A DNA stretch of 64,000 nucleotides from Adineta vaga (Eukaryota; Animalia; Rotifera), in the NCBI GenBank assembly GCA_021613535.1, contig CP075495.1:1674001-1738000 (forward strand), read 5' to 3'. Below the pieces are notes generated by a model. That model did no database searches and had not been told where the DNA came from. It saw only the letters and a program-made list of their open reading frames with translations. Made by a program: the position numbers and the translations under genes. This document shows positions 4,641-60,259 of this stretch, in pieces (the stretch's first letter is position 1; each line of letters begins with the position of its first letter).

Positions 4641-6030
4641 ATGCAGCAAGTTCTTAACTTGAATCAAATCGTTTTTTTACTGTTTTTGAATATTATCTAT
4701 GTATCAACTGATATCTTATATCAATGTAATTTTGATGATGGTATGATATTACACCATTGTTTTACTAGTCCAATTACAATTAGTAGTCATGTTGGAACAG
4801 CAGATTTTCTTGAACCAAATGCACCTCTTTCCGATGTAACTTCGACTTGTATGTATCAGAATTTCGAATAGAAATAGTTCATCAATCAAAATTTTTTGCT
4901 TAGCGAAACCAACTGAGAGTGGAGAAGTATGTCAATTACCTTATACAATTTTTGACTATAAATGGAAAATGTATTTTTGTAATGATGGTTATTGTCCAAC
5001 AAAGAATGATTCCAATAGTTTATGTCAACATGGTTTGTATGATATAAATAATAAATTTGGGTTTTTTTAAAATTTATTTGAATAGGAAGATTTGGATATA
5101 TACAGTTGTTTGATACAGCAATAGAATCTTTTCAATTAGATACTCGAACGAATGGTATCAATGGTACAGATCAACAATGTTTAATTTATTATTATTATAT
5201 GTCACCGATAGGTGATAAAAATATTACAATAATAAAAGAAGAAAAAGGTAATAAGGAGGAAATTATTGATTCAGTTAGTGATACACCATTTAATGGATGG
5301 ATTGAACGACGTGTATCATATTTTATTAAAATACCAAATTATAAAGTAAGACTATATTCATTGAAGTAGATATCAAAATGAGACTTTAGATTTATTTTCT
5401 TGTACAAAAATCATCCATTTCACATACTCCATATATTGCATTTGATGAAATATCAATTCACGAAGGTAGTTGTGGTAAGATAAATTACATTAGGATAAAA
5501 GCCATCAAACTTTGCTAATGGTATCTTTTATATAGATGATCAATCGATAACAACAACACAATCGATAATAACTAGTTCTGTACGATCATTATAATAAACA
5601 TTCGTATTCTATACAATGAAGTTTTCTTTAGGAAACAACTACACAAATTATAACATCAACAGATTCATTAATTTCATCGACACAAACAGAATTAATATCT
5701 ACAATATCTTCATCGTCTTCAATCACAACACCTACTGAGCATTCTTCTACTAAATCAACCATTGATCATGCTTCCAGCGACTCAACTACTGTGCAGGTTA
5801 CAAATACAACTAGTCACAATAGTGTTGTCTCATCATACACTCGTGTTCTTCCATATAAAACACATGATACTATTATTTTATCTGTTATTATTCCTCTAGT
5901 ATGGATCGTATTCATTGTTGTTATTATTTGGATCAAAAGATCTACACATACTTCTAATAATGTCTCTAAGCTCGATGGAAACAATCGATTATCAAGTAAT
6001 TTCGAACTTAGTAATGTGTCTTGTGATTAA
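4641..6030 (+). CDS. MAM-like domain, mucin-stalk type-I membrane protein (paralogue A)
   Basis: Signal peptide, then ILYQCNFDD..., PLSDVTS, a Cys-rich exon (CQLPY..WKMYFC..GYCPT..C), QCLIYYYYM, FNGWIERRVSY and IAFDEISIHEGSC (MAM-like). Followed by a Thr/Ser stalk, TM IILSVIIPLVWIVFIVVIIW and a short tail. Confidence 0.8.
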
Positions 6031-9905: not shown

Positions 9906-10130
9906 TTTATTTTTCGAAAATCTATCGAATTTTTTTTTCATATTATTATTAAAAAAGAAGTCATTGACATCATTTGAAAAGTTTTGTAACTATAAGCATA
10001 TCTATCGACTAAACGACATACAGATATCTCAACACAAAGTGATAACTATGTTATTTCTTTATTCATAGATAACATAAATAAGTTATCTTTGATACTATAA
10101 AATAAGAATGAGTCCTATTTTGATATTTAA

Positions 10131-12292
10131 ATGACAAACAATATGTTTTTCATTCCTCTGTAAGTTCTTTTTCAACAATACAGATATAATAATCGTATAC
10201 TATAAGATTTATCATAGTTCTGAAGTTAATATCACATTTAAATTCGCAAATTATTTACGAATGTAATTTTGATAATGCAATTGTCACCAACAATTGTTTC
10301 ACTACGAATATTATTGTAAGCACTGGTGTGGTCGCGGCAGCTAGTTCGGGTAATAAGAACGATACTTTGAATTTTTTTATTCGAATGGTTTTTTTTAGCT
10401 CCTTTTATGCCAATGTCTGATGTTACTTCGATTAGTAAGATAATTCTTACTTTCTTCTTATTCTTTGAATAATTATTTTGATTTTAGTTCAACCTACAAA
10501 TGATGGAAATTTATGTGCTTTACCTTATAGAGTAGGTAATTTCACATGGGATATGTATTTTTGTAATAAAGGATACTGTCCAACAGCAATGAATACAAAT
10601 AGTGCATGCGCACTTGGTTAGTTGACAAAAAAAAACAATCAAACGATTGATTTTAGTTTGAAACATTTAATATATTACTTAGGTAAATTTGGTAGTATAT
10701 CCTTACTCGATTTTACAATGTATTCTTATCAACTAAAATCAAAATCTGGTTTTATTGATGGTATTAATGAACAATGTCTGATCTATTATTACTATATGGC
10801 AAATTCAACTCGAAATAGTATCACAGTTCTAAAGCAAGACATCAATGGTGTAAATGAAACGATTGATAATGTAACAAATGCACCGTATAATGGATGGATT
10901 AAACAAATGGTTTCATTTTTTGCTGTACAATCGAATTATACAGTAAAAACAATTCATTTGTTTATATCGTATCTAAATGGAATACTTAACATAGATATTC
11001 TTTGATGTACAAAAAATTTCAGGTGGAGCTGGATCACATGCAGGATTGGATGAAATATCAATTCAGCAAGGATATTGTAGTAAGTAGATTTCTAAAAATA
11101 AATAAAAAAAAATAAACTTGATTTATTCAGATGAGATTGCAACAACTAGTTCGATCATTCCAATGACTTCAAAAGATACGACATTAATGTGAGTATTTAT
11201 AGGAAATATTTGATAATGTCTTGTGAATTTATACAGAACTACACAATCAATTGCACAAACAACAACTGTAAGAGAATTTGCGAAATACGAAAAACAATAA
11301 GCATACTAATACAATCTTTTCAGGAATCTATTATCACATCAACAACAACCACAGTAATTCATATTTTTACGAAACACTAAATTATAATAATGTTTACATA
11401 ACTATTAATTTTAATAGGAAACAACACTTTCCACTTCAAGTACTACAAGGTAAGTTCAATAAGTAGTTTAATGAATATGTACAAAAAAATGTAATCATAG
11501 TACGTTATCAACAACAACAACAAGTACGATCAAAACTACTAGCACGTATGTAAAACTAACATACTTTTAAAAGCATTCTTATACATTTAAATTAGGACTT
11601 CTTCAACAATATCATCTACAATTATCAGTACAAATGTGTCACCGGTAATGTATCATTGAGTAAACTTGTCTTAGCAAATTTATAAATAGAATATATATCA
11701 AAATTGTCCTGGAATATTCCGAAATAATTGCACTAAAATAGATGTTAACATATCTTTCCTACACCTCCACATGATTTTCTTTGCTTGCTTTCGAAAAACG
11801 ATAAATATAATTGTCAATTTTTTCGTTCCAACAACAATAATAATCTTTCCCTTGACTGACAATGTCAACAAACATAATCTACATGATAACTAACGTTAAG
11901 TAATACATTCTAGTGTACTTAATATTCCTTTTTTTTCTGTGTAGGTGGACATTACTTCGACAGAGACTAATTCTTCTGACATTACTCAAATCATGTTTAC
12001 AACACAATATCACAATTCCACAATATTACAAACAACGATTACATCATCAATAAAAACATCATCGATCACAATAATAAATACAATCACTAGTCCTACAAAA
12101 CCTTCGAATAAAATTCTAATCATTGTTTTATCAACTGTCATTCCAATTTCTATAATTTTATTAATTATCGGAATTATTCTATGGAGAAAATCCATTTCAA
12201 AAAGTTCTGTTCCTGATACTTCACCCAGATTTACTAATCTTGATAAACATAAAAACAGATATAGTGATTTAGAACTCGATTCAATGATATAA
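10131..12292 (+). CDS. MAM-like domain, mucin-stalk type-I membrane protein (paralogue B)
   Basis: MTNNMFFIPL|FIIVL..NSQIIYECNFDNA, PMSDVTS, CALPY..WDMYFC.GYCPT, EQCLIYYYYM, PYNGWIK, GLDEISIQQGYC; many Thr-rich micro-exons; TM ILIIVLSTVIPISIILLIIGIILW; tail RFTNL..YSDLELDSMI. Confidence 0.8.
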
Positions 12293-12372
12293 CAAAGTAT
12301 TTTTTAATTCTAAATAAATATCCTCTTTGTTTTTTTGTTTAATTCACAAGAAGAAGAAAAAGAGAGAGAAAA

Positions 12373-13032
12373 TTAGTATTTGACAACTCTGATCGGATAA
12401 CGAACAGATGAATTTGCATGTACATGTTGAAAAGGAATTCTAGATACGAATGCTGTATAAATAAAAATTGCTAAATATGCAATTGGAAAGAGAAACATAA
12501 GAATTGCCACTGCTAATTGACCTTTGAGAATTTGAATTTTAGTTGGAGCTGTTGAAAGTTGTTGATTATAAGGTGTTACTGCATTTGCATCTAAACCAAC
12601 CAATATACAAATAAAAATCGATGCAATTAAATGAGCAACTAATGTATATAATGAACAAAGAAACGAACAATCATAGACAATCACTAAGAAAGAAAGAAAG
12701 AAAAAAAGGAATGTGATTACTAAAGAATTGTTTCTTCAACACTTACCAAGAAAATACATGCATACAGTAGCAAGAAGAAAAGCGAGAGAACACCAAATAC
12801 CTGCTCCTGTTGATGCAGTATTAGAATATGTATTCGAATTATCTACTGCTAAACTTGCAATTTCTAGTATAATAATAATCAAAGTAAAAAGAAGCATTAA
12901 TGTCGCAAGAATAATTGTGATAGTATATGGCCATTGTCGACGCCAACGTTTTTCGTGTGATGTTAATCGTACTCGTTGAATAATAGGAGAATTACGTCGA
13001 ACATAAAATTGAGGTTGACGATATTGATACAT
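12373..13032 (-). CDS. Four-TM membrane protein (MS4A/CD20-like topology), 2 exons
   Basis: Four hydrophobic segments and a TGAGIWCSLAFLLA motif resembling MS4A TM2; intron at about 12687-12744. Confidence 0.6.
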
Positions 13033-42414: not shown

Positions 42415-45400
42415 TCAATTCTGTTCTTGTTCATTATCATATAAACGTTTATATTTCATCAGAGCTTGATTGATTTCATCATCAGATGGTTCACGTAAAC
42501 TTCGTCTAATTAAATAAAATAAATAAACATAAGATAAATACTATTGCAAGAAATATTCGTAATTACTTAAACAAATGAAAAAGTGTTTTAACAAAATATG
42601 TATTCATTAATCCATGATGACTTTGAGCAAATCCACTTTCGTCAAATCGAGCGACATTTAATGAAAATAACTTGAAAATTGAAGAAGAAAGATCAAATTA
42701 AATTCACTAAATAAATCAATAGACATACTTCAACAATAAATCCCAGTACCAAAGCTAAGATATAAACATTAGATAAAAACCACCAACTAACCAGATATAA
42801 TTGACTCCATCTAAAAAGAAAAATTTTCTTGATACTTAACTAAACACATTTTCAATTAACCTTGTAGAAAATTCTCGAAGAGCAACTAAGAACACACCCC
42901 AATTATTAACTAACATCACATCATATAACACCACAACAGTTGACTAAAAACGAATGATATTTTCTTCTTCTTGCTTTTCCTGTCGCAACACTTACAAAAA
43001 AATCATCGAAATTATTCGCCCAATATTGACTTTGTTGATACGAACCACACGTAGCATTTCTAAATAAATGAATTGAAAAACTGTAAATATCATTTCTTAT
43101 CTTACACAATATCTGATTCGGTCGGTGGTTTAATAACTCCACGAAAAAGCCACATACCCAACACAGCATAACTATAGAATAAACACTAAGTAAAACGAAA
43201 TTCTTTTTTTTTTCTGTTAATTGAGAGAAATTAAAACATACAATAAGTATTCCAATAAATGCTTTTAAATTTTTCATTCCATCACTAATTGTTCCCATAA
43301 TAATTCCATAATTAGTAAAATGTGGCATTGAACGAATTGTTCGAAAAACAACAAATAAATTCAGTATACGTGTTATAGCCCATATTGAAGTTGCTGTTCC
43401 TCGGGCATCACGTGCAACTTCACTAAAAACAACAAAATCACATTATTCGAGAGAAAAACAAATGTTCATTTACCTTGCTGTTATACTTAAAGTTCCATAG
43501 ATACCACAATGAACAATATGAAGGACCTATTCAACATATAAACTTACGAAAAATCATTAGGAAAATATTGTAAATAGTTACAAATAAAGCAAGAGCTATA
43601 CTAGCATCAAATGTATTGAAAAGATATTTAAAGAATACTTTTGGACGAAGTGACCAAAGTTTAAGACTTGATTCCAAAAAATAATAAATACAGAATGAAA
43701 ATAAAATATTCTAAATCGTAAATAAACAATCTTAATTACTATTTCTTCTCATAAAATACCATTTTACCGATAGAAAAACATCGATTGTAAAAAATTTCGG
43801 ATGATATCGAAGACTACCTTCAACCTAAATAGATACAAATTCATCTCATTTCATCTCATCTCATTATCTTTTCTACATACGACAAGAATAATAAAATTAA
43901 TAAGACCAATTGCATTTCCAAACCAAGTTAAATATTTCGAAGCACCAATTAATTGAACTAATGCCCATATACCTGTATATTCATGATGTTCAATCGGCTA
44001 GAAAAAAAAGACATTTATTTTCTTAACAAAACTTTTCATATACCATTTTTTGAATATCAGCATCCAATGATAACATTGCTAATGAAAACATATCCCAATT
44101 GACTTCATTATTCTGTTCATTATTTCTTGATAATGTCTAATAGATAGAATTATTCAATTGAAATTCTACTAAAAGAATAAAGCTTTACATTCAACAATTC
44201 TTGTTTCAGAAGATAAGGTAAATTTGAATTCGAAATCACTTGTGTCACAACTAACATTGGTGCTGTTGTTCGTGATCTAAAATTTTCGATTACATTTCAT
44301 AGAACAAATAAACAAAACTAACATTCGATGAGTAAGTAACGACGTTATTGTATCATCAGTTGTTGTTGTTGTTGTCAATGATGAAGTTGGAATGATTTGT
44401 CGTTCAAGTAGAACATCGAAACAAGCACGAACAGCTAAACGACGACGAAATAATGAATTTTGCATTGATGTCTAACAAAAACATTGACAAAATTAATATT
44501 CACAAAAATTCTATTTACTGTGAAGAATTCTTTGAATGTATTCATTTTAATAACAGTAAATAATGTCATTAAACAATATAATCCTAAATAAAAATAGATA
44601 TGTCGAGTTTTATATTTATAGAAATAATTTACCAATTGTAAGAAAAACAGCAAAATAGATGATGTACAATCGATTTTTTGAATAGGCAGGAATAGTAACT
44701 AAACGATTGAAGAAGATTTTTCTTTTCTATGAAAAAGAGAGCAAGGAAGATTTTTCTTTTTCTTTACTATCAGGATTATTCGCAGTTGTTAAAAGTACAA
44801 CTAAATTCAATAATGAATCTGCAAAATCCGGAAAATATTTTGTTCCTTCATCAGCTCGTTCATTGGGAGAATCTTTCTAGAAAAAGAATTGTGAATAGCT
44901 TTTGAAATTAATTCATAAAATAGATACTTTTACGGGTGGAAATAAAATCATTCCAATAACCGAAAAGAAATAGACATGAATACCAAGAAGAATTGTAACA
45001 CTAGAAATCTTCTAATTCAAACAGAATTAATTCTCAATAAACAAAATTACCTAAGAATTTGTAAGAATGATTTACGTAAACTATTGAATATTTTTTTCAT
45101 TTCTTGTGATATCACAGCCATGTAGAATGGTCGTAATAGAAATCGTATGTTTACTGTCTATTGAAGAGGGAAAAGATTGATAAACTTGTCGTTTATAATA
45201 GAATTTTTACTTTGATTTGACAACCTAAACTTGATGATATGATTAAATCAATCATTGAAACAGTTGTAACAATAAAATAAGCGATAATCCATGGTTTTTT
45301 TCGAGCATTTATTAATCCAATTAAATAAATCTAAAGAAATTCAAAAGTAAATTCATAGATACATAGATATTCATCTTACTCGAATAATCACATCGATATA

Positions 45401-45739
45401 GAATATAATTAAACATAAGAATTCAATTGTTATCTGTACACTACATGGTAATGTTAAACGATTTCGTTCTTGTCGTAAATCAGATGTTCGACTAAATGAT
45501 GATGGATATTGAATGAATATTAATAATAATTGACATGAAACAATCAATGTTAATAGACGTTGAATCCATTTTGACCAATATAATCGATAGAGTTTTAAAA
45601 TATTCAATGGTGATAATTTATGAGCTATAGAACGAAATGAATATGCATCTTCAAGAAGAACAATTGCTTGAACAAGATGTCGTTCGGACCATGATTCACG
45701 TGTGCCATGACGTGGATCATCCACAATTATATCTGACAT
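42415..45739 (-). CDS. TPCN2: Two-pore channel 2, multi-exon
   Basis: LVQAIVLLEDAYSFRSIAHK; pore 1 LLTTANNPD.TIPAYSKNR; LFRRRLAVRACFDVL; CGSYQQSQYWANNFDDF; pore 2 VNNWGVFL. Stop at 42415-42417. Confidence 0.93.
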
Positions 45740-45931
45740 CTGTCTACCGGTTCAAAATTTATCAAATATGATCTACAAGAATCGTTGTTATGAATAGCAA
45801 AGATATGATAAGTGATCATTTTGTTTTTTGTTCTACGTCAAGAGATTTTTTATTTTGAAATGAAAAAGAGAATAAAATTCAATCTAATAGAAAAACAAAA
45901 TGGACGGAAATGAGTTCATTACATGAATTAA

Positions 45932-46456
45932 TTAATTGGTTTTTTGTTTCGTTGGTTTTTTGCAGAATGATAAGACTGCTGTAAAAACGAGTATTAATTC
46001 GAATACACAAAATCCAAGTTGAGTACAACCAATAATAAGATCAAGTTTCAAAACAAACCATTGAAAAAATGTCCAATAAAGAAATGTACCAATTGATAGG
46101 AATGTAAATAGAAATCCAATAATAATGTAGAATAAATGTTCAGTGAGATTGGCATAGATTATTATTTCTAAACGAATATATTCTAATGTTAATGTCAAAC
46201 ATAATGCAAAGATTTCAAAGCCATAGATAGTCCAATTTGTTGGCATTGGAATAAGACCTTTCCAAACGAAGATTAAGATTTCAGCCACGAACCACTAGAA
46301 TAGAAAATATAACGATCGATTTTTACTTAATTCAAATCTTACGAGAAAAACAATTGGTCGATGAATATGACATAATGATTGTAATGGAATGGAAGATCGA
46401 ACAATAGAATTTTCATCTGTTACACGCGCATCAAACGTTGATTTTGTTTGACTCAT
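45932..46456 (-). CDS. TMEM216: Ciliary transition-zone protein, TMEM216/TMEM17/TMEM80 family; 2 exons
   Basis: VRSSIPLQSL, EILIFVWKGLIPMP and LEYIRLEIIIYANLTE match the Transmemb_17 family; four TM segments. Confidence 0.75.
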
Positions 46457-46508
46457 TTTATCTGAAAATAAAAAAAAGACAAAAGAGAATATAATCGGAT
46501 ATGTTTAT

Positions 46509-47042
46509 TTATTCATCATTTAATTCTTCAAGTTTTTTTTCAATTTCATCTTTTCTTTTCATTTTTGTTAGTTGATCTTTATCTAGACTAGATGCATCTT
46601 GTTCATAACGTTTTTCTAAAATGTTTATTTCTTTTAATAATTTTTGAAGTTTTTTCACTTCTTTGCTTTTTTCTTCATCAGGTGTTCGTGTTGTTAGTTT
46701 GGCCATTTGATTTCTCAATTGTTTTTCTTCTTTTTCTAATTTCTTCGCTCGTGCAGCTTTTTCTTCTTCAGTTAAAACCATTCCAGGTATCAAATTGCCG
46801 TTTTCAATACGTCGTTTTGTTTCTACTTGTGCTTGTTGTCCCATAGATTGATACACCGGCATTTCTTCTTGTGGAACATAGTTTTCTTTAACACGAATTG
46901 CTTTTCTCCATGTTCCATCGGGTCGTTGTGAACCAGGAATGAATGTATCACCAGTTTTCGGATCACGTACAATATTTGCACGTTCAAATGCTGCACCACG
47001 TGCAGTCATTTTCTGTCCAGAATTTGAAGGCGTAGCAGACAT
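46509..47042 (-). CDS. PYM1: Partner of Y14 and mago (PYM/wibg), exon junction complex disassembly factor
   Basis: [31 protein letters not shown]; C-terminal [26 protein letters not shown]. Confidence 0.96.
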
Positions 47043-47177
47043 CTAGAAATCAAAACGAACATGTTTTCTTTCTTTTGTTTTTGAATATTGAGAACACACA
47101 CACACAAACACACATACAAAACAATTGAGAATGTACAGTTCTTATATAAATAGATTTACTACTAGGAAAAATAGAAA

Positions 47178-50100
47178 TTAACGTGTTGAGAAACGGGACG
47201 AAGGAGAAGAAGAGGAGGAGGAGGAATTTTTTAAGGATGGAGGCGAATGAAATGTATCGAGAACTTGAGTACGAAGTTGTTCAACGACATGATAAAATTT
47301 CACAGCTGGACCAAGTTTAAATTCTAATAAATCTTGAACTGTATCTAAATCATTGAGAAGAAGAAGGGCAGCACCATCAATTTCCTTGAAATAAACAATT
47401 GGAAGAAGAATAGAAAGGAAAGTTAGTATTCAAATTTACTTGTTCTTTTATTGTTTTTAATGCAAAGGAACATCCAGATTCATTTAAATACCAACAGACA
47501 TCATTTACATTCCATGTCAATGGATTTCGTGGATCGATCGGTGGTGGAATTGGATAGGATGTAGATCGAATAGGTGATACGGTTGGTGTTATTTCAGTTT
47601 TAATTGTAGGAATATTGGGAGATTGAGATTGAGGAATTGATCGTCGATTTTTCTTGATTTTATTTGTTGAAGAGGACACATCCGATCTGACAGGAGGAGG
47701 AGGAGAAACAATTGTTGGAGATAATGAACGTTTTTTCTTTGATATTCGTGAACGTTTTGTTTCTAGAAAGAGATAAACTTCTATGAGAAAAGGAAAAATG
47801 CTTCATCTGTAAATAGGAACCTTGGATGGGCGCATGAGTTGTTGTTGATGATGAGGAAGAGGAGGAAGTTTCTGATACTCCATGTTGATTTATTTCAACC
47901 GATTCTTGTTTGATCGCTATTGATGATACTTTAGATGCATCAATAACTTTCTGTTTTCTATTTGTTCGTGTTATCGTATGTGTTTTTGGTTCGATATGAA
48001 CACGAAAACCACGTGTTTGTCGATCACTACCTGGTAATGGTAAAGGATCATGTGTACTAGTAATGGTTGTTGATGACATTTCTATCGATGGAGATTCTTC
48101 TACAACAGGACTGGACACATTTGAAGAGATAGTAGTATTCTTTAAATGACATAATAAAGATTTTTGTTTTCGATAACGATTTTGTGCTGCACGAAATTGA
48201 CTTCGTTTATGTTTGGAATGGATTGAAAAAGCTAAAAGTGAAAATAGAAGATCGAAAGTTCTGTCATACGAATCTTTTTTTTTCACATACCAAAAGTATT
48301 GGATAGAATATGACAATGATCGGAACAATGATGTTCAATACGTTGAACACTGAGAAGATTAGGACAAGCTTCTAATTGGGTACAAGCATGACGAAGATAA
48401 TGCTGCACAGATCGAGGTTCAGTTGGAAGAGAAATCGGACGAATTAATTTCGAAAATCGTTTTGCAGATTTAATCTGTTCTGTTCGAAGATTGCATTTTG
48501 ATTCGGAATTTATCTGATGATCTAATCGACGTAATACACGTTGAGCAGTTGTAGGTAAAACTGATAGAAGATGATGAAATACATCAATGAGAACGTAACG
48601 ATAAGGTCCGGGACCGAATTGAGATGGTATACGTGCAAGACGTGATGAACAGAGATGTGGACCAGAAAAACAACGAATATTCACATAGATCGTCAATAGA
48701 TATATATCGTTCAAATAGACTCGAGGAATTTGTGGATAGTGAGTTACTGTTGAAAATAAGCTAGCAAATAAAACATAATTCAATCCGACATCTTTCTTCA
48801 TAGTATAAATATCACTTACTCATAACGATTTTGTTCATAAGTTTTAATATTCATTTGATATTGAATTGGTGTAATCAGTTCAAAACCATTCAATTTCGCC
48901 CATCCAACTGGAAATATATCCATCGAATTGATTGGTAGAACATGATAAAATAAATGTTCATCTTTGAGTAGTCTTGTATCATCAATTCGTATCCACATCA
49001 AATGATCAATAATATGAATAATAGTCACTGAAAAAACACAATCTTTATCATTTAATCTATAGATCATTTCCATTTTCATTCCAGGTTCTGCTCGATTATT
49101 TCCTGCGGCATTCAATGTAATCAAATTAAAACAACGTTCTGGTGCTAAATCACTTAGTCCATGTTTTTCAGTATAAAAATTCCAGTAATCTTCCGATTGA
49201 CGAATAGATTTACCATTCAGTAATGTAAGTTTATGTTCTGCAGCCCAATGTGCAGGTAATAAACGTGGATCAGTTGAATACGAAACAAATGATATTTCAT
49301 TGTCATCTTCATTGTCAATAATTACATCGAAATAATATTCATTATGAATATGACCAATTCGTCCAATAAAAACATTTTGATTTTTCATATCAAAGATTTC
49401 TAATTTCATTCGTTCAGTAAAACGATGTTTACTTATTTCCTGTTGATCTTTGAATAATTTCGAAGGAAAAAATTGTGTCTTGAATTGCAATAAACACGTA
49501 TCAATAATATGTTGTTTATCAATAGGCAATGTTAAGCATGATGGAATATCATATGAATAAATCGAATTATTAGTCGATGTCCAACCGATTGGATGAATAC
49601 GATAATCAAGATAAAATAAATAAATATCACAATTGGACAGATTAGAATCTTCTTCTTCTTCGTTGTTATTATTACCGGTTATTTTAGTGATATATCGAAG
49701 ATGTAATCGACCACCTTGATTCTTTAAAATTCGCACAAACCACAATGTCCAAGGACGTTGATAATCTTGTAATTCAAATACCATACCAACTTTTAATTGT
49801 TCTACAGGAGTTAAACCAATTTCCTAAATCGAATAAAAAGTATATTCAATTAATGATCTATGTATATATGAATATTACTTTATCAAATAAATACGTAGGT
49901 GATGTTTCATAACTATCTTCATTTTCTCCTTTAATAACAATTGATTGTTTATCATTTCCATTCAAAACAATATTATTATTCACTGTTGTTTGTTGAATTG
50001 CTCGTTTTGTTACTACTGGTGGTGGTAACATTAATTTACTATTATCTTTACACCAGCCAATTGGATGACATCGTTGTTCATAAACATATGCCCAAAAATC

Positions 50101-51118
50101 ATTCGATTTATCTTCATCGGGAATTCCGACATAATGTAAACGAATTAAATGATGTGAAACAAATTGTATTTGTGTTAACCAATATAAATCACGTTGAACA
50201 TCATAACAATATTCAAGTTTCATATCGATTTCCAAACCGGATTGAATTGATGTAAGATAATGATCGAAAAATTCTTCTGATACAGAACGTTCATCAATGT
50301 ACGAGAAATAGTTTGACCAGAGAAAATTTGACGAAGACAAAGAAGAAGAAAACGTTGCACAAGAATAAAGTTCATGAAAGATAATACGGGAGGAGAATGA
50401 ACTAAAAACAAATATATGAAAAACAAATAAAATAATAGTGAAAGATAAGATTTACTTGATTTTTTTCGTCGTATAATAAAGATCCATTTGGGATTGAGTA
50501 GAATTATCTGACAATGAAGATTTAACTATCGAATTATGTTTGAATTGATCTGTTAATGATTGATTCGTGTCTAGATTAACATCGGGATTTGATAAAGATA
50601 TTCTTTGGCAATCATCATCAATGGAATCTGTATATGCACAGGATAGATCTTCTCTCCAATGATCATTATTTTCTGTTGTTAGAATCGGTCGTTGACTAAG
50701 ATCAAGAATGGATTCATCCGTTGATGTTTTTTTAGAATTAGTATCGGATTGACATGATGTAATTGAGATATTAGAAGTTTCTAGATGACCTATTTGAGTA
50801 TCTATGGTCACTAGGTGATCAGATGTTGTATCCATCAATATGTTCTGTTCTTTTACATTATTGTCATCTGGAAAACGAAAAAGAACGAAAAAAACTTTTT
50901 CTTTTTTTTCTTCTTCTATATTCTTAATAATCGTGGACGATCAAGGTCAAATTGATTGAACTAAAATAATAGCGCTTTATGGCGAAAAAATACTTGTTGA
51001 TATGAATAATATCATGTAAAAAATATCGTTCCTTAGGAAAGAAAAGTTTGGCTGAGAAGAGAAACGAAGAGAGACAAGACGACAGGGAGAGAAGAGAGAG
51101 AATATTACCTTTTATCAT
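47178..51118 (-). CDS. SFMBT1: Scm-like protein with MBT repeats, SLED and SAM domains (SFMBT family Polycomb protein)
   Basis: Four MBT-like repeats (FLWSNY..MKLE..CHPIGWC, IHPIGW, LLPAHWA, IFPVGWA), SLED (CFSGPHLCSSRLARIPSQFGPGP) and SAM (PLTWNVNDVCWYL..KEQ|EIDGAALLLL..LGPAVK). Short first exon MIK at 51109-51118. Confidence 0.9.
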
Positions 51119-51359: not shown

Positions 51360-53131
51360 TTAAGCAGGCGCAACACGATTCAGTTCTAAAGCAGAAGGAG
51401 AAATGCCAATTCGATTGTTAGAAGAAGTTCCATGTGTTAGACGAGCACAACAATGCATTATAGAGGATTTTTTTATCCACATTAGAATACCAATCAATGT
51501 AACTGAAATAACAGTCAAAACGGCTGCTAGAATAATCACTGTAGTGTTTCGATCAGGTGTAACAACGTTTTTATGAGTTGTAGTAGAAGTATTTTGTGAT
51601 GTAGACGATGTAGGTTTCGTTGTAAGTTGTGTCTGATAGAAAAGTGAGATACGATTGATATGACATTAACGAGCATATGCATATTTCTATCAGACGAATT
51701 TAGATTTAGAGACAAACGAAAATAACTAAGAATTCATTTTCAAAAGAGCTGTCGAGTTTTGGAAATATTACACACTGTTGTTTGCAAAGTTGAAGTTGTG
51801 TTCTTGATTGTTGTAGATATTCGAGTACTTGTCTAAAAAAACATCATTTATAGAATGTTTGCATATGAGATATACTCACTATTCTTTCAGTCGTAGCAGT
51901 TGTTATTTTCACTGTTGTGGACATTGAAGTACTTGTCTACAAAATATCAGTTATAAAACATTTGTCTACACGCTGAAAAATATCTTACCATTGATGGACT
52001 GATTGAGGTAACTGTCGTTGTTCTTATAGTAGATGGAGTGTGGCTGTTAAAACAATATAACTATATGAATTCAAACATAATTTAATGGCTTTTTCCAACA
52101 ATCTGACCTGCTTGAGACGCTTATGGTGTTTGGAGTCGTCGAAGTGGTAGTTATGGATTCGTCTTCTAATGAGAAGATCGAGAAAGATTAGTTTTATATT
52201 AATTTGTCATTTATACATACGACATTTCCCTACAACTATCGAAATCTCATCGAATGCAATCGTGCTTAGAGGACCAGGAAACCCAGAGGTCTTTCCAAGA
52301 TCAAAGTACATCTAAATATAACACACAAACATATTAAACACGTCTATCTACTAACTTCACTACCTTATATCCTGTCTTCACTGTTTCATAACTTATTCGA
52401 CGTTCAATCCATCCATTATGTGGACTATTTGTCACAGTATCAATCAATTTACTATCATCACCTGTTTCTTGTACTCGTACTTTGATATTTTGATTTGTAT
52501 TACTTATGTTTGGCAAATAATAAAAATAGGTTAGACACTGATGGCCAGTGCCATTGATACCATTTGAATCAATATTTAAAGTGAAAGTGATAGAAGATCC
52601 TACTGTCGTAAGGGTGAAATGACCAAATTTACCTAAAAAATGAGAATATATGCATTTGAGGTGAATGTTCTTAGTTTATTTACCTGATTGACATTTTGAA
52701 TTTGGATCAGTGTCTGTTTGACAATAACCGTTATTGCAAAAGTACATATGCCAAGTATAGGGAGTAATCTTGTAAGGTAGACTACAGTTTTTTCCATTGT
52801 CAGTTGGTTTTACTATGCAATAAGAGATAGATAGTGTGTTGGCAGTGGAGAGAAAAGATAAGAATGCTTACGACTTGATGTAACATCAGAAAGAGGTGTG
52901 GTAGGTGCCTGTGTACCAGCATTTCCCATTTTATCGGTGACAAGGATTCCAAGAAATCCATCTCGAACTAGACAACTAGTATCGATGGTAGCAGTATCGA
53001 AGTTACATTCATACAAAATTTGTCCAAAAGTTATAGTAACACAACTATAGACTAAATGCATAAAATATCAGACTGTTTAGGAAATTATTGAGGATCTTAC
53101 TGAATAGAACAGTTCTTTCACAGTAATACAT
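51360..53131 (-). CDS. MAM-like domain, mucin-stalk type-I membrane protein (paralogue C)
   Basis: MYYCERTVLF|..GQILYECNFD, CSLPYKITPYTWHMYFC, HQCLTYFYYL, PHNGWIERR, IAFDEISIVVGKC; Thr-rich micro-exons; TM VIILAAVLTVISVTLIGILMW; tail ISPSALELNRVAPA*. Confidence 0.8.
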
Positions 53132-56100
53132 TCTTTCCAACTTCTTTCAAAATAACGTGCGCCGGTTGTCACGATAGTTTTTTGTCATTCTTTCCTCACA
53201 ATTTAACTGATATATCTTATCTCATATTTGAATAAACGACATCCTTTTTTCTCTATTTTTAAATTATCATAACAAATAGACTCATTCATCCTTCAAACTG
53301 AACATATAGCAGCATTAATCAGTCGGTTCTTAATGCATTATACAACTATGAATATGGTTTAATTCATTACATATCGATTAGACACACGAATTATCGAGGA
53401 AGTTGGTAGACAAAAATTATAGCAGACGGTCATACTTTATTATTGCTGTTTTTTTCCAAAAACAAAAGAAAAAAATATGACTTATGTTAGCTATACTCGA
53501 GATAACGGCGATACGATTTGATTCAGTTCAATTCCAGAAGGTGATATTTTTGTCTTTAGAATTGATGCTTTTTTTATCCAGAAAATAGCGACACCAATAA
53601 TTGCTATGGAAACCATTGAAAGTACAGTGGCCATAAGGATATTATATCTCTTGTTAGATTTGTGGTCTTGTTTATTGTTTGTCGATGTTCTATAAGTAGT
53701 AGCGTTTGTAGTGATTGATATATTCAAAGGTAAAATTGCCGTTATATTTAGATTATCTTGCTCTGTGATAGAAGATGTCATTGATAATACGACTGTTGAA
53801 CTCTAAGATAAAAAATAGAATTAGTTTAAGGAAAACTGAAAATGAGAAGACATGTCAAAATGCGAGAGAAAGAATTCAACATGATCTTCAATCTATCTTG
53901 AATATCAGCAAAATTCTTGTTCAGTTACCACGATCTCTGTTGATATCGATTCCATCGCATTCATCTAAAGATAAATGCACTGTAACGTTTTATTGATTAC
54001 AAAACGATGAAATATTACTGGTGTTGATGATTCTAAATCAGTTATGATGGTAGATGTTATTTGAATCGTTGATATTTCCATGGCAGGCGATACAATTGTG
54101 TTTTGAATAGCAGATTTCTCGACTAAAATAAATCAGACATAAAGATTTTCAACTTCACATATATTTATACATACAACAATTTCCAAGACGAATCGAAATT
54201 TCATCAAGAGCAATTATACTGAAAGGAAAAGTTATTCCATCTACTTTCTCCAAATCAAAAAACATCTAAATATTGGAAAGAAAAGAAAATAATAAAAAAT
54301 GCTATCTCATATTTCAACTAGTAGATAATATACTCGATAATTCGACTCGGTTGTACTGAATGATACTTGACGTTCGATCCAACCATTGAATGAACTATTT
54401 GTGACAATATCAATTATTTGATTCTTATCATTTGATTCTTTTATTCGAATTTTGATATTATTTTTTATACCATCTATATTTGGTAAATAATAATAGTAGA
54501 TCAAACATTGTTCACCAGCACTATCAGCACCACCGGTCACAGTATTTAGAGTGAAAGTAATTCGTCTGGGAACAGAAAAGTCATAATAACCAAATTTACC
54601 TACAATGAACCATATAACAGTTGAACATATAGTTTTAGGCAAGATGGTTTTTGTTCATTTACCTGATTGACATTTTGAATTTAGATTAGTATCTGTTTGA
54701 CAATAACCGTTATTGCAAAAGTACATATCCCAAGTATAGGGAGTAATCTTGTAAGGTAGACTACAGTTTTTCCCATTCTCAGTTGGTTTTACTATGAAAT
54801 AAATATATTGTGCATTGATAATAGAGAGAATAGGTGATGAGTCTTACGGCTTGACGTAACATCAGAAAGAGGTCCAGTAGGTCGATCATTACTAACAGTA
54901 CCTTTTTTTTCACCAATACTCAATCTGTATGCTCCAAGTCCTTTCAAACAATTGTTCCATGATATACTAGTATCAAAATTACATTGATACAATATTTGCG
55001 CAGGCGTTATTATCAAACAAAAATATACTAAACACAAAGAACAAGATACACTTTATGTAAATGGAGACATAAAAAACAGATCTTACCAAAAACTTGAATA
55101 ATAATGAACCATTCCATAGTGTCTGTATGATTCTGTCAAAGAATATGTAATATTTTTTATTCACTTGACTTCTTCATATTACTCATGTGAGATTGTAAAG
55201 TATTATTATCGTAATAGAGAACAAAGAGAAGTATTTAATTGAATGATGTATGCTGGATTTTCATTATCCTAGCTGACAGTCTCAGTCTCTTGTGTCATAT
55301 CATTTTTTATATTATTTTCTTATTAGAAATATGATCAAGTACTTTCTTAGTCTAATAAGTAGTTCACGTGTTTAAACTAACTTCATAGAAAGATATCAAA
55401 TTTCAATATATGATATTATTTTAAATTAATCATACAGCTGATATACAATAAATTGTTAAAATTAACGATAACTGTGTGTAGATACAAATGTACAAGGATA
55501 TGCAAATAGAAAATGAAAATTTTAAAAATAATGATCTTCTGTGTACTCTGGTTGAAGTGCAGTCATTTCATGTTCATCAGATAAGTTAGTAAACGGATGA
55601 GAAATACTACTCATAAGACCGCTAGCTGTTGCTTTCTTTACCCAGATACTAATAACGACAATGATAAGTAGTCCAGCTGGAATTCCACAAGCTAATGAAA
55701 TGATCAATGCTTTATTCGATGATCTTTTATCTGTTTTCTGTTCTATTGAATTCTCTGAGGTAGATGTTGTCGATTTTGATGTAGTATTGTTAATCATAGT
55801 AGTAAGAGTAGTCATTTGTTGGACTGTCGTAGTTTCTTCTGAAGAGATGATAGTAGAAATTGTGGTTGTCGGTATTGTTATAACAGTCGTTGTTGTTGAC
55901 GTTGATGTTTGCGTGATAAAAGGAGTAGTGGTAACTATAGTTGAAACTGTGGTTGTTGTTGTTGTTCTTGTAGTAGTTACTACGATAGTTAAAGGCGTAG
56001 TCGACTAGAATAATGAACGAAATTTATAAGATAAAACTTTTTAATAAACATAAATTTAAAACATTATTAGGATAGCGACTATATTTGGAGCTTTGTATTT

Positions 56101-57485
56101 ATACATGTTTAAGTTATATTATTTAACAAGAGTCATCTCTTTTCGATGTTATAGTCTTGTTACTAGAAACATCGCTGAAAAAATATTTTCCGAAATTGTC
56201 ATCTGAATCAAAATTTGATACCGCTTTGTACTTATGGAAGAAGAGAATATGATCTGGATTATATGAAGAATTTATGTCCAAGCAAAATCTTTTTATTACC
56301 GTTGAAACAGTTGTAGATTCAATTGTTGTCAGCTCTCTTGTAGTGGTCTACAAAAATAAATACGATGTATTTCGATAATGTCTTTTAAATTTTAGTTTTA
56401 CCAAGGTCGTCAGTTCAGCAGTTGTTGTCTGCATAGTTGATGTTTCTGTGACACTATTATTGAAAAATATGAGAAAAAATAGAACTATTAATATCAATGC
56501 ATTGTTTAGATCCTACGTTGTTGGTATTGTCGTCGTCGTCGTCGTCTCTTCTTCAGTAGTCGTTGTAGCTGGCTTTGATGTTGTTGTTGTTGTAGTAGTT
56601 GTTACCGGTGAAACTGGAGATATAGTCACAGATTCATCAGCTAGAATGAAATGAATAGATAGACGATGATTTTTGAATGCATTTCGACATACAACATTTC
56701 CCTACAACTATCGAAATCTCATCGAATGCAATCGTGCTTAGAGGACCAGGAAACCCAGAGGTCTTTCCAAGATCAAAGTAGACCTAAATATAACACACAA
56801 ACATATTAAACACGACTATCAACTAACTTCACTACCTTATATCCTGTCTTCACTGTTTCATAAGTTATTCGACGTTCAATCCATCCATTATGTGGACTAT
56901 TTGTCACAGTATCAATCAGTTTACTATCATCACCTGTTTCTTGTACTCGTACTTTGATATTTTGATTTGTATTACTTATGTTTGGCAAATAATAAAAATA
57001 GGTTAGACACTGATGGCCAGTGCCATTGATACCATTTGGATCAATATTTAAAGTGAAAGTGATAGAAGATCCTACTGTCGTAAGGGTGAAATGACCAAAT
57101 TTACCTAAAAAATGAGAATATATGCATTTGCGGTGAATGTTCTTTGTTTATTTACCCGATTGACATTTTGAATTTGGATCAGTGTCTGTTTGACAATAAC
57201 CGTTATTGCAAAAGTACATATCCCAAGTGTAGGGACTGACTTTGTAAGGTAGACTACAGTTTTTTCCATTGTCAGTTGGTTTTACTATGCAAGAGATAGA
57301 TAGTGTGTTGGCAGTGGAGAGAAAAGATAAGAATGCTTACGACTTGATGTAACATCAGAAAGAGGTGTGGTAGGTGCCTGTGTACCAGCATTTCCCATTT
57401 TATCGGTGACAAGGATTCCAAGAAATCCATCTCGAACTAGACAACTAGTATCGATGGTAGCAGTATCGAAGTTACATTCATACAA
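52215..57485. repeat. About 800-bp direct repeat (52215-53016 vs 56687-57485), roughly 98% identical
   Basis: By-eye alignment gives about 16 substitutions and one 3-bp indel, introns included. Similarity stops abruptly at both edges of the MAM-like domain. Confidence 0.95.
53491..55117 (-). CDS. MAM-like domain, mucin-stalk type-I membrane protein (paralogue D)
   Basis: MEWFIIIQVF|..AQILYQCNFD, GPLSDVTSS, Cys-rich exon, EQCLIYYYYL, FNGWIERQVSF, IALDEISIRLGNC; TM ILMATVLSMVSIAIIGVAIFW; tail ISPSGIELNQIV. Confidence 0.8.
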
Positions 57486-57604
57486 TACTTGTGCAGATAT
57501 CACTAATAAACAACTATTTACTAAATATGAAGGTATTGAAATACATTATGCAAAGCAGTCCGAAAAATATTACCGAAAAGAAAAACACTTGTCGGACACT
57601 CCAT
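55522..57604 (-). CDS. MAM-like domain, mucin-stalk type-I membrane protein (paralogue E)
   Basis: MECPTSVFLF|..AQVLYECNFD; ectodomain nearly identical to paralogue C; long poly-Thr stalk; TM LIISLACGIPAGLLIIVVISIW; tail HPFTNLSDEHEM..EYTEDHYF*. Confidence 0.8.
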
Positions 57605-58028
57605 TCTGTTTTTATTTCTCTATTAGCTCTCTAGGTATTGTTAAATTTATCTTATAGTTCTTACACTACTTTATTCATACAGAGATAATCAATTCATGTT
57701 ATCTTGCTTGAGAGAAAAAAAATAAATGTCTTCTTTTTAGCCCCGTTACACGAAGAACTCAAGTAAGTTTTTTATTATAAAGTATCATCTTTTATCAGTG
57801 CCTTGTCATACACTTTTATTTAGAACCTATTTCGCTCTTCATAAACATATATATATATATATTAGCGTAAGGTAAAAACAGCGATGCTAAATATAACGAT
57901 TAAAATAACAGAGATGAGTTCATTGACCATGAATGAGTGAGGATGTACATTCGAAATGAATCTTTCTGAAAGTACATTGGTATTAATTTATCTGTTTTAT
58001 TGAAAACAAAAGAAACGTACAATCACTC

Positions 58029-60259
58029 CTAGAAGGCAGTTTCATCTACTGAATCAAGTTCGATTTGAGATGAGAACATTTCATTCTCATCTAACGTTGT
58101 AAATGGCTGCGAGAATGTCCCAAGAATATCAGACGATGCTGATGATGAAATTTTCATCCATACAATACCGCCAACAATGGCAATCAAAACAACAGGTATC
58201 ACAGTTGCTACTACAATAACTAACGTTTTATTCGTAGGCGTTGGTTCAAGATTTTCTTCTATGGTTGTAGAATTTTCTGAGACAGAAGTTAACGCTGAAG
58301 TTATGGATGTCTGACGTGAAGTTGTTACGCTTATTGACGTTTGAGATGATCGTTGTGTTATTGTTGTTACCGTTGTTTTTGTTGGAACTGTTCGTGAAGT
58401 TGTAGTAATCGTTGTTGAGCGTGTCTAAAAATAAGAGAAAATTTATTCATGAATGATGTTTCGCTGATAGTAAGATAATTTCAGAATGATCTAAACTCTA
58501 CCGGAGAAGTACTGATTGATGTTTGTTCTGTGGTAGCCGTTGTTGTTGTTGTTGTTGTTGTTGAAGGAGTTCTGATGGTTGTAGATGAACTGGATTTTTG
58601 ATATGACGTATCACTCTATAATAGTAAAATTTCTATATTGTGATCTAGTAGCTCTTAATGTTAATTGCAGTGCTATAAATAATTGTACGTACGATAGGAA
58701 GAAACAATCACTTACGTTGGTAGTAAGAAATGTTGTCGTTTTTAAAGATGGACTCTCTGTTGATACTCTGACCTATGTTATGGAATGAAATAAAAGTTTG
58801 TTAAAGTATATGTTTTACTGTAGATGTTTTCGTGTCGTAAGATTTAGTTGAACTAAGACTAAAGCAAAAAAAAGTATCTAAGATATTGCTAAGGCAGCTC
58901 GTAGTCTATCTTACGTATCAGTTGTATCAGTCGTATATATTATTGAAGAAATCTAGTTGAAAAGAAATGGAAGATACTTTGAGAAGAGAGGCAAGCTGAA
59001 TCATAGATAATTTTATTTTCGATTACATAATAGTCGAAAGCAGCTTTCTTTGGCAACGTTTTACTTTTGATTAAACAATCATTTTCATGACAAATATTTA
59101 TTTTTAAATCGTTCATTCACAGTGATGTCGTATGACTTACAAAAGTTTTCGTTAGAATAGTCATCGTAGTTGGTGATGTTTTTAATGTAGAAGTTAATGT
59201 ACTGTTCATAAGATATGTAGTAGATTTAAGCAGTCGAAGATTATCTATAAATTCTTACCTGGTTATCTCCATCGTATTTGATGTTGTTAGTGGTTCATCT
59301 AAAATAAAAATTGTTGAATTAATCAACTGTTTCATTACTGAAAAATACATACTGCAAGCACCTTGAGTAATAGAAATCTCATCAAAAGCAATGCTTGTTC
59401 CAATCGTATCATATACAGCTTTTGCAGCATCGAAATACACCTACAACATACACATATCACTGTGTCCTTACAGTACAGCAATATCTCCGTTTACCTTGTA
59501 ACCAGGTGCTTTTGCATTATAGGTCACTTCTTGTTTTATCCATCCATTATAAGGACTACTTGTCACACGATCAATCACTACATCTTCACCATCTACTTCT
59601 ACTTTATGAACTGTGATACTCTTTTGTGTTGCATTCGACATGTAATAATAATAGATCAAACATTGTTTGTTCATACCATTGATACCACTATCAGATGGAG
59701 TTCGTATTTGAAAAGATTTTATTGCTGTAGTTGCTAGTTTTATTGAACCAAACTTTCCTATTGACATGAACAATTAACAATAGACATCAGACATGTTTCA
59801 TGTATGTTTACCTAATGTGCACGTGCCATTGACATTAGGTGCTGTTAGACAAACACCAGAATAACAGAAATACATATCCCATTGATAGGCACCTATTTGA
59901 AATGGTATTGCACATCGTTGTCCATTAGCAGTTGGTTTTACTAACAAGAAGATGAAATGTTATATGATAATAGCAGATGAGAAGGTAGTTGTTTGGCTCA
60001 CAGAGAGACGTGACATCAGAAAAAGGACTGTCTGGTGATTGTCCTGTGAAACTGCCTGTTGATGATTGTAGTAGTAGTCCTCCTGTGAGACAGTTTTCAG
60101 CAATTGTTGCACTGTCAAAATTACATTGATATAATATTTGAGAATTGACATTGAATAAACCAATAATCACTAAATATAATATATGATACATTACTTGAGT
60201 CACTCAGTACAAGACTCTCTACCAAAACAGAAAAGAATCGAACTTTGTTGTATCTTCAT
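58029..60259 (-). CDS. MAM-like domain, mucin-stalk type-I membrane protein (paralogue F)
   Basis: MKIQQSSILFCF|..SQILYQCNFDS, PFSDVTS, CAIPF..WDMYFC..VCLT..CT, KQCLIYYYYM, PYNGWIK, IAFDEISITQGAC; TM LVIVVATVIPVVLIAIVGGIVW; tail QPFTTLDENEM..IELDSVDETAF*. Confidence 0.8.

Follow-up and report, generated by a model that had tools for sequence, protein, structure and literature searches.

How does nearly the same extracellular domain come to sit on different stalks, membrane anchors and cytoplasmic tails in genes of a bdelloid rotifer? The question is raised by a 64,000-nt stretch of Adineta vaga chromosome 2 (positions 1674001–1738000; hereafter the window, whose own numbering is used below unless another piece is named), which carries six genes of a MAM-domain family, called A to F. 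The chromosome is 16.27 Mb long, and the genome comprises 100.8 Mb in six contigs. An earlier note on this DNA, made from its letters alone, had described four same-strand paralogues (C, D, E and F, on the minus strand) and two dispersed copies (A and B, on the plus strand), and all six were located by mapping or by exon matches. The best explanation as a whole, to which we give a probability of roughly 70%, is that C and E are a case of merohomogenization in a bdelloid family of MAM glycoproteins. Recurrent ectopic gene conversion, confined to the DNA that codes for the mature MAM domain, keeps the two ectodomains nearly identical; signal-peptide ends, stalks, transmembrane (TM) helices and tails evolve separately and are kept by type across genera. 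The outcome would be two receptors of one predicted binding specificity that differ in their membrane and cytoplasmic parts.

The homogenised tract and its protein

The tract occupies 52215–53016 in C and 56687–57485 in E (both on the minus strand) and extends from the N-terminus of the mature MAM domain to the end of exon 5, with three introns inside. A base-by-base alignment of the 802-bp core contains 17 substitutions and one 3-bp indel, or 97.9% identity, in agreement with the figure of about 98%, introns included, estimated by eye in the earlier note. A blastn self-comparison aligns 52208–53057 with 56680–57526 at 96% over 851 bp. The edges also lie where they had been placed, between the first MAM residues and the intron after G-K-C: the 5' edge coincides with the second codon of the mature protein (L-Y-E-C), and the 3' edge is found ~6 nt into the intron after exon 5. 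Identity rises from 36–54% to 97–100% and returns to its former level within ~60 bp at either edge. The sequence flanking the tract is not alignable, as claimed, but the same claim made for the signal-peptide exons did not stand: exon 1 and exon 2 are homologous in C, D and E and have diverged to roughly 50–70%.

The 17 substitutions are distributed about equally, with 13 in ~633 exonic bases and 4 in ~169 intronic bases. Because the introns are as alike as the exons, the tract reflects exchange of DNA, not constraint on the protein, which bears out the ectopic conversion proposed before. At the protein level, the ectodomains of C and E are 97% identical and their last 45 residues 17%, i.e. 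one ectodomain is carried on two different tails, each conserved separately. Gene D lies between them and shares their exon structure, yet it has a MAM domain of its own, only ~58% identical to that of C at the amino acid level. F is not homogenised with C or E.

GC content is ~30% across the whole window and is higher in the C/E MAM segment than in the locus (0.35–0.36 vs 0.31 in A. vaga, 0.42 vs 0.35 in A. ricciae). A. vaga F and G1, a copy on chromosome 5 described below, are equally GC-rich, and G4 and G5 on that chromosome are not elevated, a pattern that speaks neither clearly for nor clearly against GC-biased conversion. Inside the tract, the read contigs of several runs depart from the assembly (52288, 52945, 52960, 56810–56815), in some cases where C and E are the same in the assembly; these differences may be allelic variants of C or E.

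In the family layout, a signal peptide (judged by a hydrophobic N-terminus) precedes a MAM domain that holds a Cys-rich insert; a stalk rich in Ser and Thr, a single TM helix and a tail of ~40 amino acids follow. Single exons or database proteins served as queries in sequence searches, and exons were concatenated only for trees and codon alignments. The MAM assignment made in the earlier note is confirmed by full-length scores of 34–45 bits against the PF00629 profile, whose gathering cut-off is 26.4 bits: 36.2 for E, 35.4 for the C part of UJR24894.1, 38.4 for F and 35.0 for A, with 33.7 for A. ricciae C and 45.1 for A. steineri E. Of the single exons, only exon 4 matches (in C, D and F), at 20–24 bits, below the threshold. 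An AlphaFold2 model of E residues 20–236, built with a 13-sequence family alignment, has a predicted local distance difference test (pLDDT) score of 84.7 and a predicted template modelling (pTM) score of 0.83. Its top Foldseek matches in the PDB are meprin beta and alpha, the neuropilin-1 MAM domain, enteropeptidase, LAST-MAM and the PTPRK and PTPRM MAM domains, with E-values of 1e-6 to 1e-4. The MAM cysteines (alignment positions 7, 18, 127 and 214) are invariant or nearly so in 13 family members. Exon 3, a symmetric exon of 129 nt, codes for the insert, a 43-residue segment inside the MAM domain with four family-invariant cysteines. The insert matches no Pfam family and has no significant sequence match in the PDB; a resemblance to FN2 domains finds no support.

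The stalks are 95–245 residues long and contain 46–65% Ser+Thr; each is followed by one hydrophobic 21-mer and a tail of 31–43 residues. With this architecture the products are predicted to be mucin-like type I membrane glycoproteins, their glycosylation being putative. With exon 4 as the query, 1.84 billion representative proteins yielded only 72 matches at E<=1e-3, and every match whose source was looked up belongs to a bdelloid (A. vaga, A. ricciae, A. steineri or Rotaria species). The family thus appears to be bdelloid-specific, as far as these looked-up sources go. Across the family the tail bears two motifs, first PFTxL and then hydrophobic-E-(L/M)-(N/D), of which C-type tails retain the second only. 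The tail likenesses seen earlier hold: C resembles D through the ELN motif, and E resembles B and F through PFTxL. Both tail types are kept from Adineta to Rotaria, which argues that the tails matter.

Recurrence in other bdelloids and in a homoeologous array

The same architecture recurs in A. ricciae, A. steineri, Rotaria and a homoeologous A. vaga array, which strengthens the analogy with paired receptors drawn in the earlier note. On the syntenic contig of A. ricciae the order is F, E, a remnant of D and C, then SFMBT, PYM, TMEM216 and TPC. Over 887 bp the E and C orthologues are 99.3% identical, and their tails are of E type and C type, respectively. This tract begins within a few bases of the codon at which the A. 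vaga tract starts and ends ~40 nt into exon 6. Amino acid identity of the C/E ectodomain between the two species is no more than 54–61%. The A. steineri C-tail gene and the E-tail genes share 80% amino acid identity in the ectodomain and 23% in the tails. In Rotaria socialis, a C-tail gene and a gene with an RLTNI tail, located on separate contigs, share 1394 bp at 90.8% (94% at the amino acid level); the C-tail gene adjoins ZNFX1, and no MAM gene is found within 10 kb of it.

The homoeologous region of A. vaga, on chromosome 5, contains five copies, four of them in tandem (G1, the pseudogene G2, G3 and G4) and the fifth, G5, inverted and at a distance of ~36 kb. G4, which has a C-type tail, and G5 share 1163 bp at 94.9% (chromosome 5, C5:15344350-15345509 and 15381753-15382908; L015:3351-4510 and L013:4754-5909 in the local pieces). 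Their stalks and tails differ, and part of the tract lies 5' of exon 2 and another part in the beginning of the stalk. In its TM helix and tail G5 is A-like, with the tail motifs PFTDL and IELN. G4 adjoins the SFMBT homoeologue, as C does, and is the C homoeologue by position and by its C-like tail, yet carries a G5 ectodomain. Across lineages the tract identities range from 99.3% down to ~87%. In each of five lineages or loci one partner has a C-type tail, the other partners being E, G5 and the RLTNI-tail gene.

Trees of the two ends of the proteins disagree. In the ectodomain tree, built on exons 2+4+5, C groups with E by species (support 100/100 in A. vaga and 100/99 in A. ricciae), the three A. 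steineri genes stand together, and F, G1 and G3 go with their orthologues. A single clade unites the three Adineta C/D/E ectodomains and then divides by species, and G4 and G5 are both nested in a G5-type group, so G5 is the donor of the ectodomain that they share. In the tail tree, built on the last 62 residues, grouping is by tail type, across species and genera. F pairs with its A. ricciae orthologue in both trees. Approximately unbiased (AU) tests reject the orthology clades with the ectodomain data (p 2e-29 to 4e-104) and the species clades with the tail data (p 3e-4 to 2e-3). Congruent trees and a gradual decay of similarity had been named in advance as what would speak against a domain-limited exchange; the trees are incongruent, and similarity stops sharply at or just past the MAM-coding edges, which comes out in favour of the finding.

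By NG86, the synonymous divergence (dS) that separates C from E inside one genome amounts to 0.048 (A. vaga) or 0.045 (A. ricciae). Comparisons between species give ~1.5 for the C/E orthologues and 0.75–1.4 for other members, up to 1.9 overall, values that are saturated. The between-species nonsynonymous divergence (dN) of the C/E ectodomain, 0.285, is modestly above that of F (0.21), G1 (0.22) and G3 (0.115). The earlier note had called the system diversifying. That word is not supported: the process homogenises, and between-species dN/dS is ~0.15–0.35 with saturated dS, so that no claim of positive selection is possible. Nor do the results support a part for asexuality, which the earlier note had mentioned.

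In A. steineri, the E-type gene is duplicated in tandem as a ~5.4-kb unit with 83% nucleotide identity (L017:4560-7372 and 10000-12708). The ectodomains of these duplicates have dN of 0.11, dS of 0.13–0.18 and dN/dS of ~0.6–0.9, an unusually fast protein divergence.

Paired receptors and rival explanations

Merohomogenization is a term from the paired opposing leukocyte receptors KLRC/NKG2, KLRA/Ly49, KLRB, KLRI and PIR (Fossum et al. 2011, PMC3210942). In these pairs, homogenisation after speciation affects only the part with the ligand-binding domain, and the signalling parts are distinct and conserved between species (PMC3210942). The bdelloid genes are alike in that the trees of the ligand domain or ectodomain follow species and those of the other parts follow type. 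Unlike them, the leukocyte receptors have C-type-lectin-like or immunoglobulin (Ig) domains, and either tails with immunoreceptor tyrosine-based inhibitory motifs (ITIMs) or charged TM residues that recruit adaptors with the corresponding activation motifs (ITAMs). On the bdelloid side there are a MAM domain and two uncharacterised short tail motifs, and an opposing function would be an analogy. A second parallel is offered by Siglec-11/Siglec-16 and CEACAM1/CEACAM3, neighbouring paralogues in which the ectodomain exons are near-identical by gene conversion and the cytoplasmic parts differ, in several lineages (PMC5701461, PMC2832619, PMC5112662). Here too the ectodomain is homogenised, the cytoplasmic part is distinct and the pattern is recurrent; unlike C and E, the Siglec and CEACAM pairs have Ig folds, known ligands (sialic acids and bacterial adhesins) and known inhibitory and activating motifs. 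With canonical MAM proteins (meprin alpha and beta, neuropilin, RPTP mu and kappa, enteropeptidase) the family has the fold and four conserved cysteines in common, but here MAM is the sole globular domain, stands on a mucin-like stalk and contains the 43-residue four-Cys insert.

Domain-restricted concerted evolution of pairs is regarded as a hallmark of vertebrate immune receptors that track fast-evolving ligands with their opposite outputs kept. To our knowledge, bdelloid recognition receptors are an essentially blank field, and literature searches for a MAM family or for concerted receptor evolution in bdelloids returned nothing relevant. Homology-directed copying is documented in the A. 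vaga genome, and recombination signatures have reportedly been found in a natural A. vaga population, to go by the title of one paper. Compared with the known gene conversion in A. vaga, the C/E tract lies between paralogues, covers one domain only and recurs across genera. Judged by their sequences, C and E would qualify as paired receptors: they have near-identical ectodomains with a different TM helix and tail, and the ectodomain-limited homogenisation postdates speciation while the tails are orthologous. In the signalling sense they fall outside the vertebrate class (no ITIM, ITAM or charged TM residue), while their evolutionary behaviour is the same. Merohomogenization has so far been described for vertebrate paired leukocyte receptors; the bdelloid MAM pair is the same process in a new family.

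Conversion, its recurrence and its restriction to the MAM-coding domain are established, and the rivals differ in how much of this they deny. A collapsed or chimeric 800-bp repeat in the assembly has in its favour that the DNA evidence comes from Logan unitigs, which enter the tract by 30 nt (k-1) only, one letter too few for the bridging rule, so that none formally bridges it. However, unitigs of DNA runs from three studies (2013, 2015 and 2021) join the tract edge to both the C-specific (52987–53417) and the E-specific (57456–57800) upstream flank, k-mer depth in the tract, relative to the flanks, is ~2x (runs X3 and X4) or ~3x (X1), and RNA contigs contain gene-specific stalk exons of both genes. 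The reads are consistent with two tract copies, short of proof; the stronger argument is that assemblies made independently for other species, among them A. ricciae and R. socialis, have the same architecture, so that the C/E tract is neither an artefact nor a one-off. We give an assembly error next to no credence. Extreme purifying selection or convergence of the proteins, which would do without DNA exchange, has only the conservation of the MAM fold in its favour; it is refuted by the three introns, as identical as the exons, and is at odds with the low identity of orthologues in other species (54–61%). Unrelated one-off conversions or exon shuffling in each genome, with no sustained concerted evolution, would suit the fact that each species offers a single snapshot and that the tracts vary in length and age (99.3% to ~87%). 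This is improbable in view of the A. vaga and A. ricciae tracts, both young (dS ~0.045), in the same orthologue pair and with the same 5' edge against a saturated species divergence, and of the single Adineta C/D/E clade that splits by species.

The harder rival accepts the mechanism and denies it a purpose: an ancestral exchange would have been followed by conversion that invites itself, with the diverged flanks and the low-complexity stalk setting the edges. Alike segments can perpetuate conversion without selection, C–E differences are equally frequent in exons and introns, and the 5' edge common to A. vaga and A. ricciae could be inherited. The family also has further tracts without obvious logic. 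One is an older conversion tract at D exon 3, the Cys-rich insert (54657–54796, minus strand), where D matches C at ~95% and E at ~92%, whereas its flanking exons reach only 47–48% amino acid identity to C; a cluster of five C/E differences at 52757–52769 falls on positions where C agrees with D, a three-way mosaicism. The other joins the last exons of G1 and of the G2 pseudogene, 94.9% identical over 313 bp (L012:5899-6211 vs L015:442-754), and is a conversion or duplication tract on the TM and tail side, not on the ectodomain side. Conversion is thus frequent in the family, the chief argument for the neutral explanation, and the C–E tract could be one neutral case among these. The tails contribute as well: an ITIM pattern is found in none of 22 tails, no ITAM is present in the scanned tails and no charged residue in the TM cores, and the two tail motifs match no known function. 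Scans of the tails for YxxPhi and di-leucine signals gave nothing meaningful. The 3' edges of the tracts differ between lineages, and so do the 5' edges in G4/G5 and in Rotaria. In Rotaria, moreover, the identity of the paralogous tract (90.8%) equals that of the C-tail orthologues of R. socialis and R. magnacalcarata (90.8%), and the homogenisation there is no younger than the split of these two species. Together with the short reach of the unitigs, most of these points weigh against the merohomogenization reading, and the constant involvement of C-type genes has to be discounted in part as the partner search began from them, a bias towards finding them in every pair.

Neutral conversion sits less easily with a C-type-tail gene that is involved in five lineages or loci with different partners, with Rotaria partners on separate contigs, with D, which retains its own MAM domain between C and E despite having the same exons, and with two tail types that are conserved across genera. 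The alternative is that selection maintains the pairing, with both partners tracking the same ligand and differing in trafficking or signalling outputs. On the present comparisons, selected pairing and self-perpetuating neutral conversion stand about equal, each somewhat short of an even chance. A more specific scenario, unlikely as it stands, would see here an invertebrate paired-receptor system of neither the Ig nor the C-type lectin kind. The C-type-tail protein, which lacks PFTxL, would be a decoy or opposing partner, matched by conversion under selection to a PFTxL-tail MAM receptor whose ligand changes fast, for example a surface molecule of fungi or bacteria; the system would predate the Adineta–Rotaria split, and G5 would have been recruited on the loss of an old partner.

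The same signature in a bdelloid MAM/mucin family suggests that neither Ig or lectin receptors nor ITIM/ITAM signalling would be a requirement of the principle. Ectopic conversion between paralogues shapes functional gene segments in these genomes even when these are 36 kb apart and inverted or lie on separate contigs. A. vaga C and E, with the two short conserved tail motifs, form a small candidate set for surface recognition and innate immunity in bdelloids.

Gene models and neighbourhood

Three database proteins match the window exactly: UJR24894.1, UJR24895.1 and UJR24896.1. The first (545 residues) is a misannotation in which the first four exons of D are joined to C and D lacks a separate model; the open frame of D is intact and supported by RNA joints, and the public annotation is corrected accordingly. 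C, D and E have a common 5' layout (exon 1 of 31 nt, exon 2 of 180, exon 3 of 129, exon 4 of 266–269 and exon 5 of 91), downstream of which the number of small stalk exons varies and the final exon codes for the TM helix and tail. In run X12, RNA contigs contain GT..AG joints at introns of C, D and E, cover gene-specific stalk exons, and confirm the C intron 52312–52363 and four E introns. C, D and E are transcribed and spliced as modelled.

Gene C (51360–53131, minus strand), from the exact spliced mapping of the C part of UJR24894.1, has its exons 1–5 at 53131–53101, 53051–52872, 52812–52684, 52632–52364 and 52311–52221 and its exons 6–10 at 52165–52108, 52043–51989, 51936–51880, 51832–51776 and 51632–51360. 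Exon 1 is predicted from homology to exon 1 of D and E. The last exon (51360–51632) codes for the end of the stalk, the TM helix and a 38-residue C-type tail that ends in ..ELNRVAPA. Gene D (53491–55117, minus strand; C-type tail with IELNQIV..) has exons at 55117–55087, 55027–54848, 54791–54663, 54599–54334, 54265–54175, 54122–54019, 53964–53929 and 53802–53491. Its 5' exons come from UJR24894.1, and its 3' exons were completed by a search for GT/AG sites and open frames, in agreement with the RNA joints. A contig joint between D and E (54512>57265), with only 23 nt on one side, was taken as a graph artefact.

Gene E (55522–57604, minus strand), from the exact spliced mapping of UJR24895.1, has exons at 57604–57574, 57520–57341, 57284–57156, 57104–56836, 56783–56693, 56640–56517, 56453–56402, 56347–56300 and 56004–55522, the last of which (55522–56004) codes for stalk, TM helix and a 42-residue PFTxL-type tail ending in ..DHYF. 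Gene F (58029–60191, minus strand) has 11 exons, from the exact spliced mapping of its database protein, and a tail with the motifs PFTTL and IELD. Of the dispersed paralogues, A (4641–6030, plus strand) was placed by exact spliced mapping, and its TM helix and tail are homoeologous to those of G5 on chromosome 5 according to the tail tree. B (~10250–12292, plus strand) has a tail with RFTNL and LELD and was modelled from exon matches and the open frame of the last exon; the model is without its 5' end.

Synteny of the block of SFMBT, PYM, TMEM216 and TPC beside the array (42415–51118) extends to A. ricciae and A. steineri and, in part, to the homoeologous regions. In R. socialis, a database model (L022:10001-13987) joins the C-tail MAM gene with an LRAT-domain gene upstream of it, probably an annotation error. 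On chromosome 5, G2 is recognised as a pseudogene by in-frame stops (L012:9836-9961 and L015:58-286). An open frame at L012:6807-7292 codes for a tail of PPFTNI type together with its stalk and TM helix; no MAM exons were detected ahead of it, and it may be a remnant or an alternative 3' end. Chromosome 4 carries three distant tandem MAM copies (C4:10185000-10193000) that have the same exon 3 insert and are 25–38% identical to C at the amino acid level.

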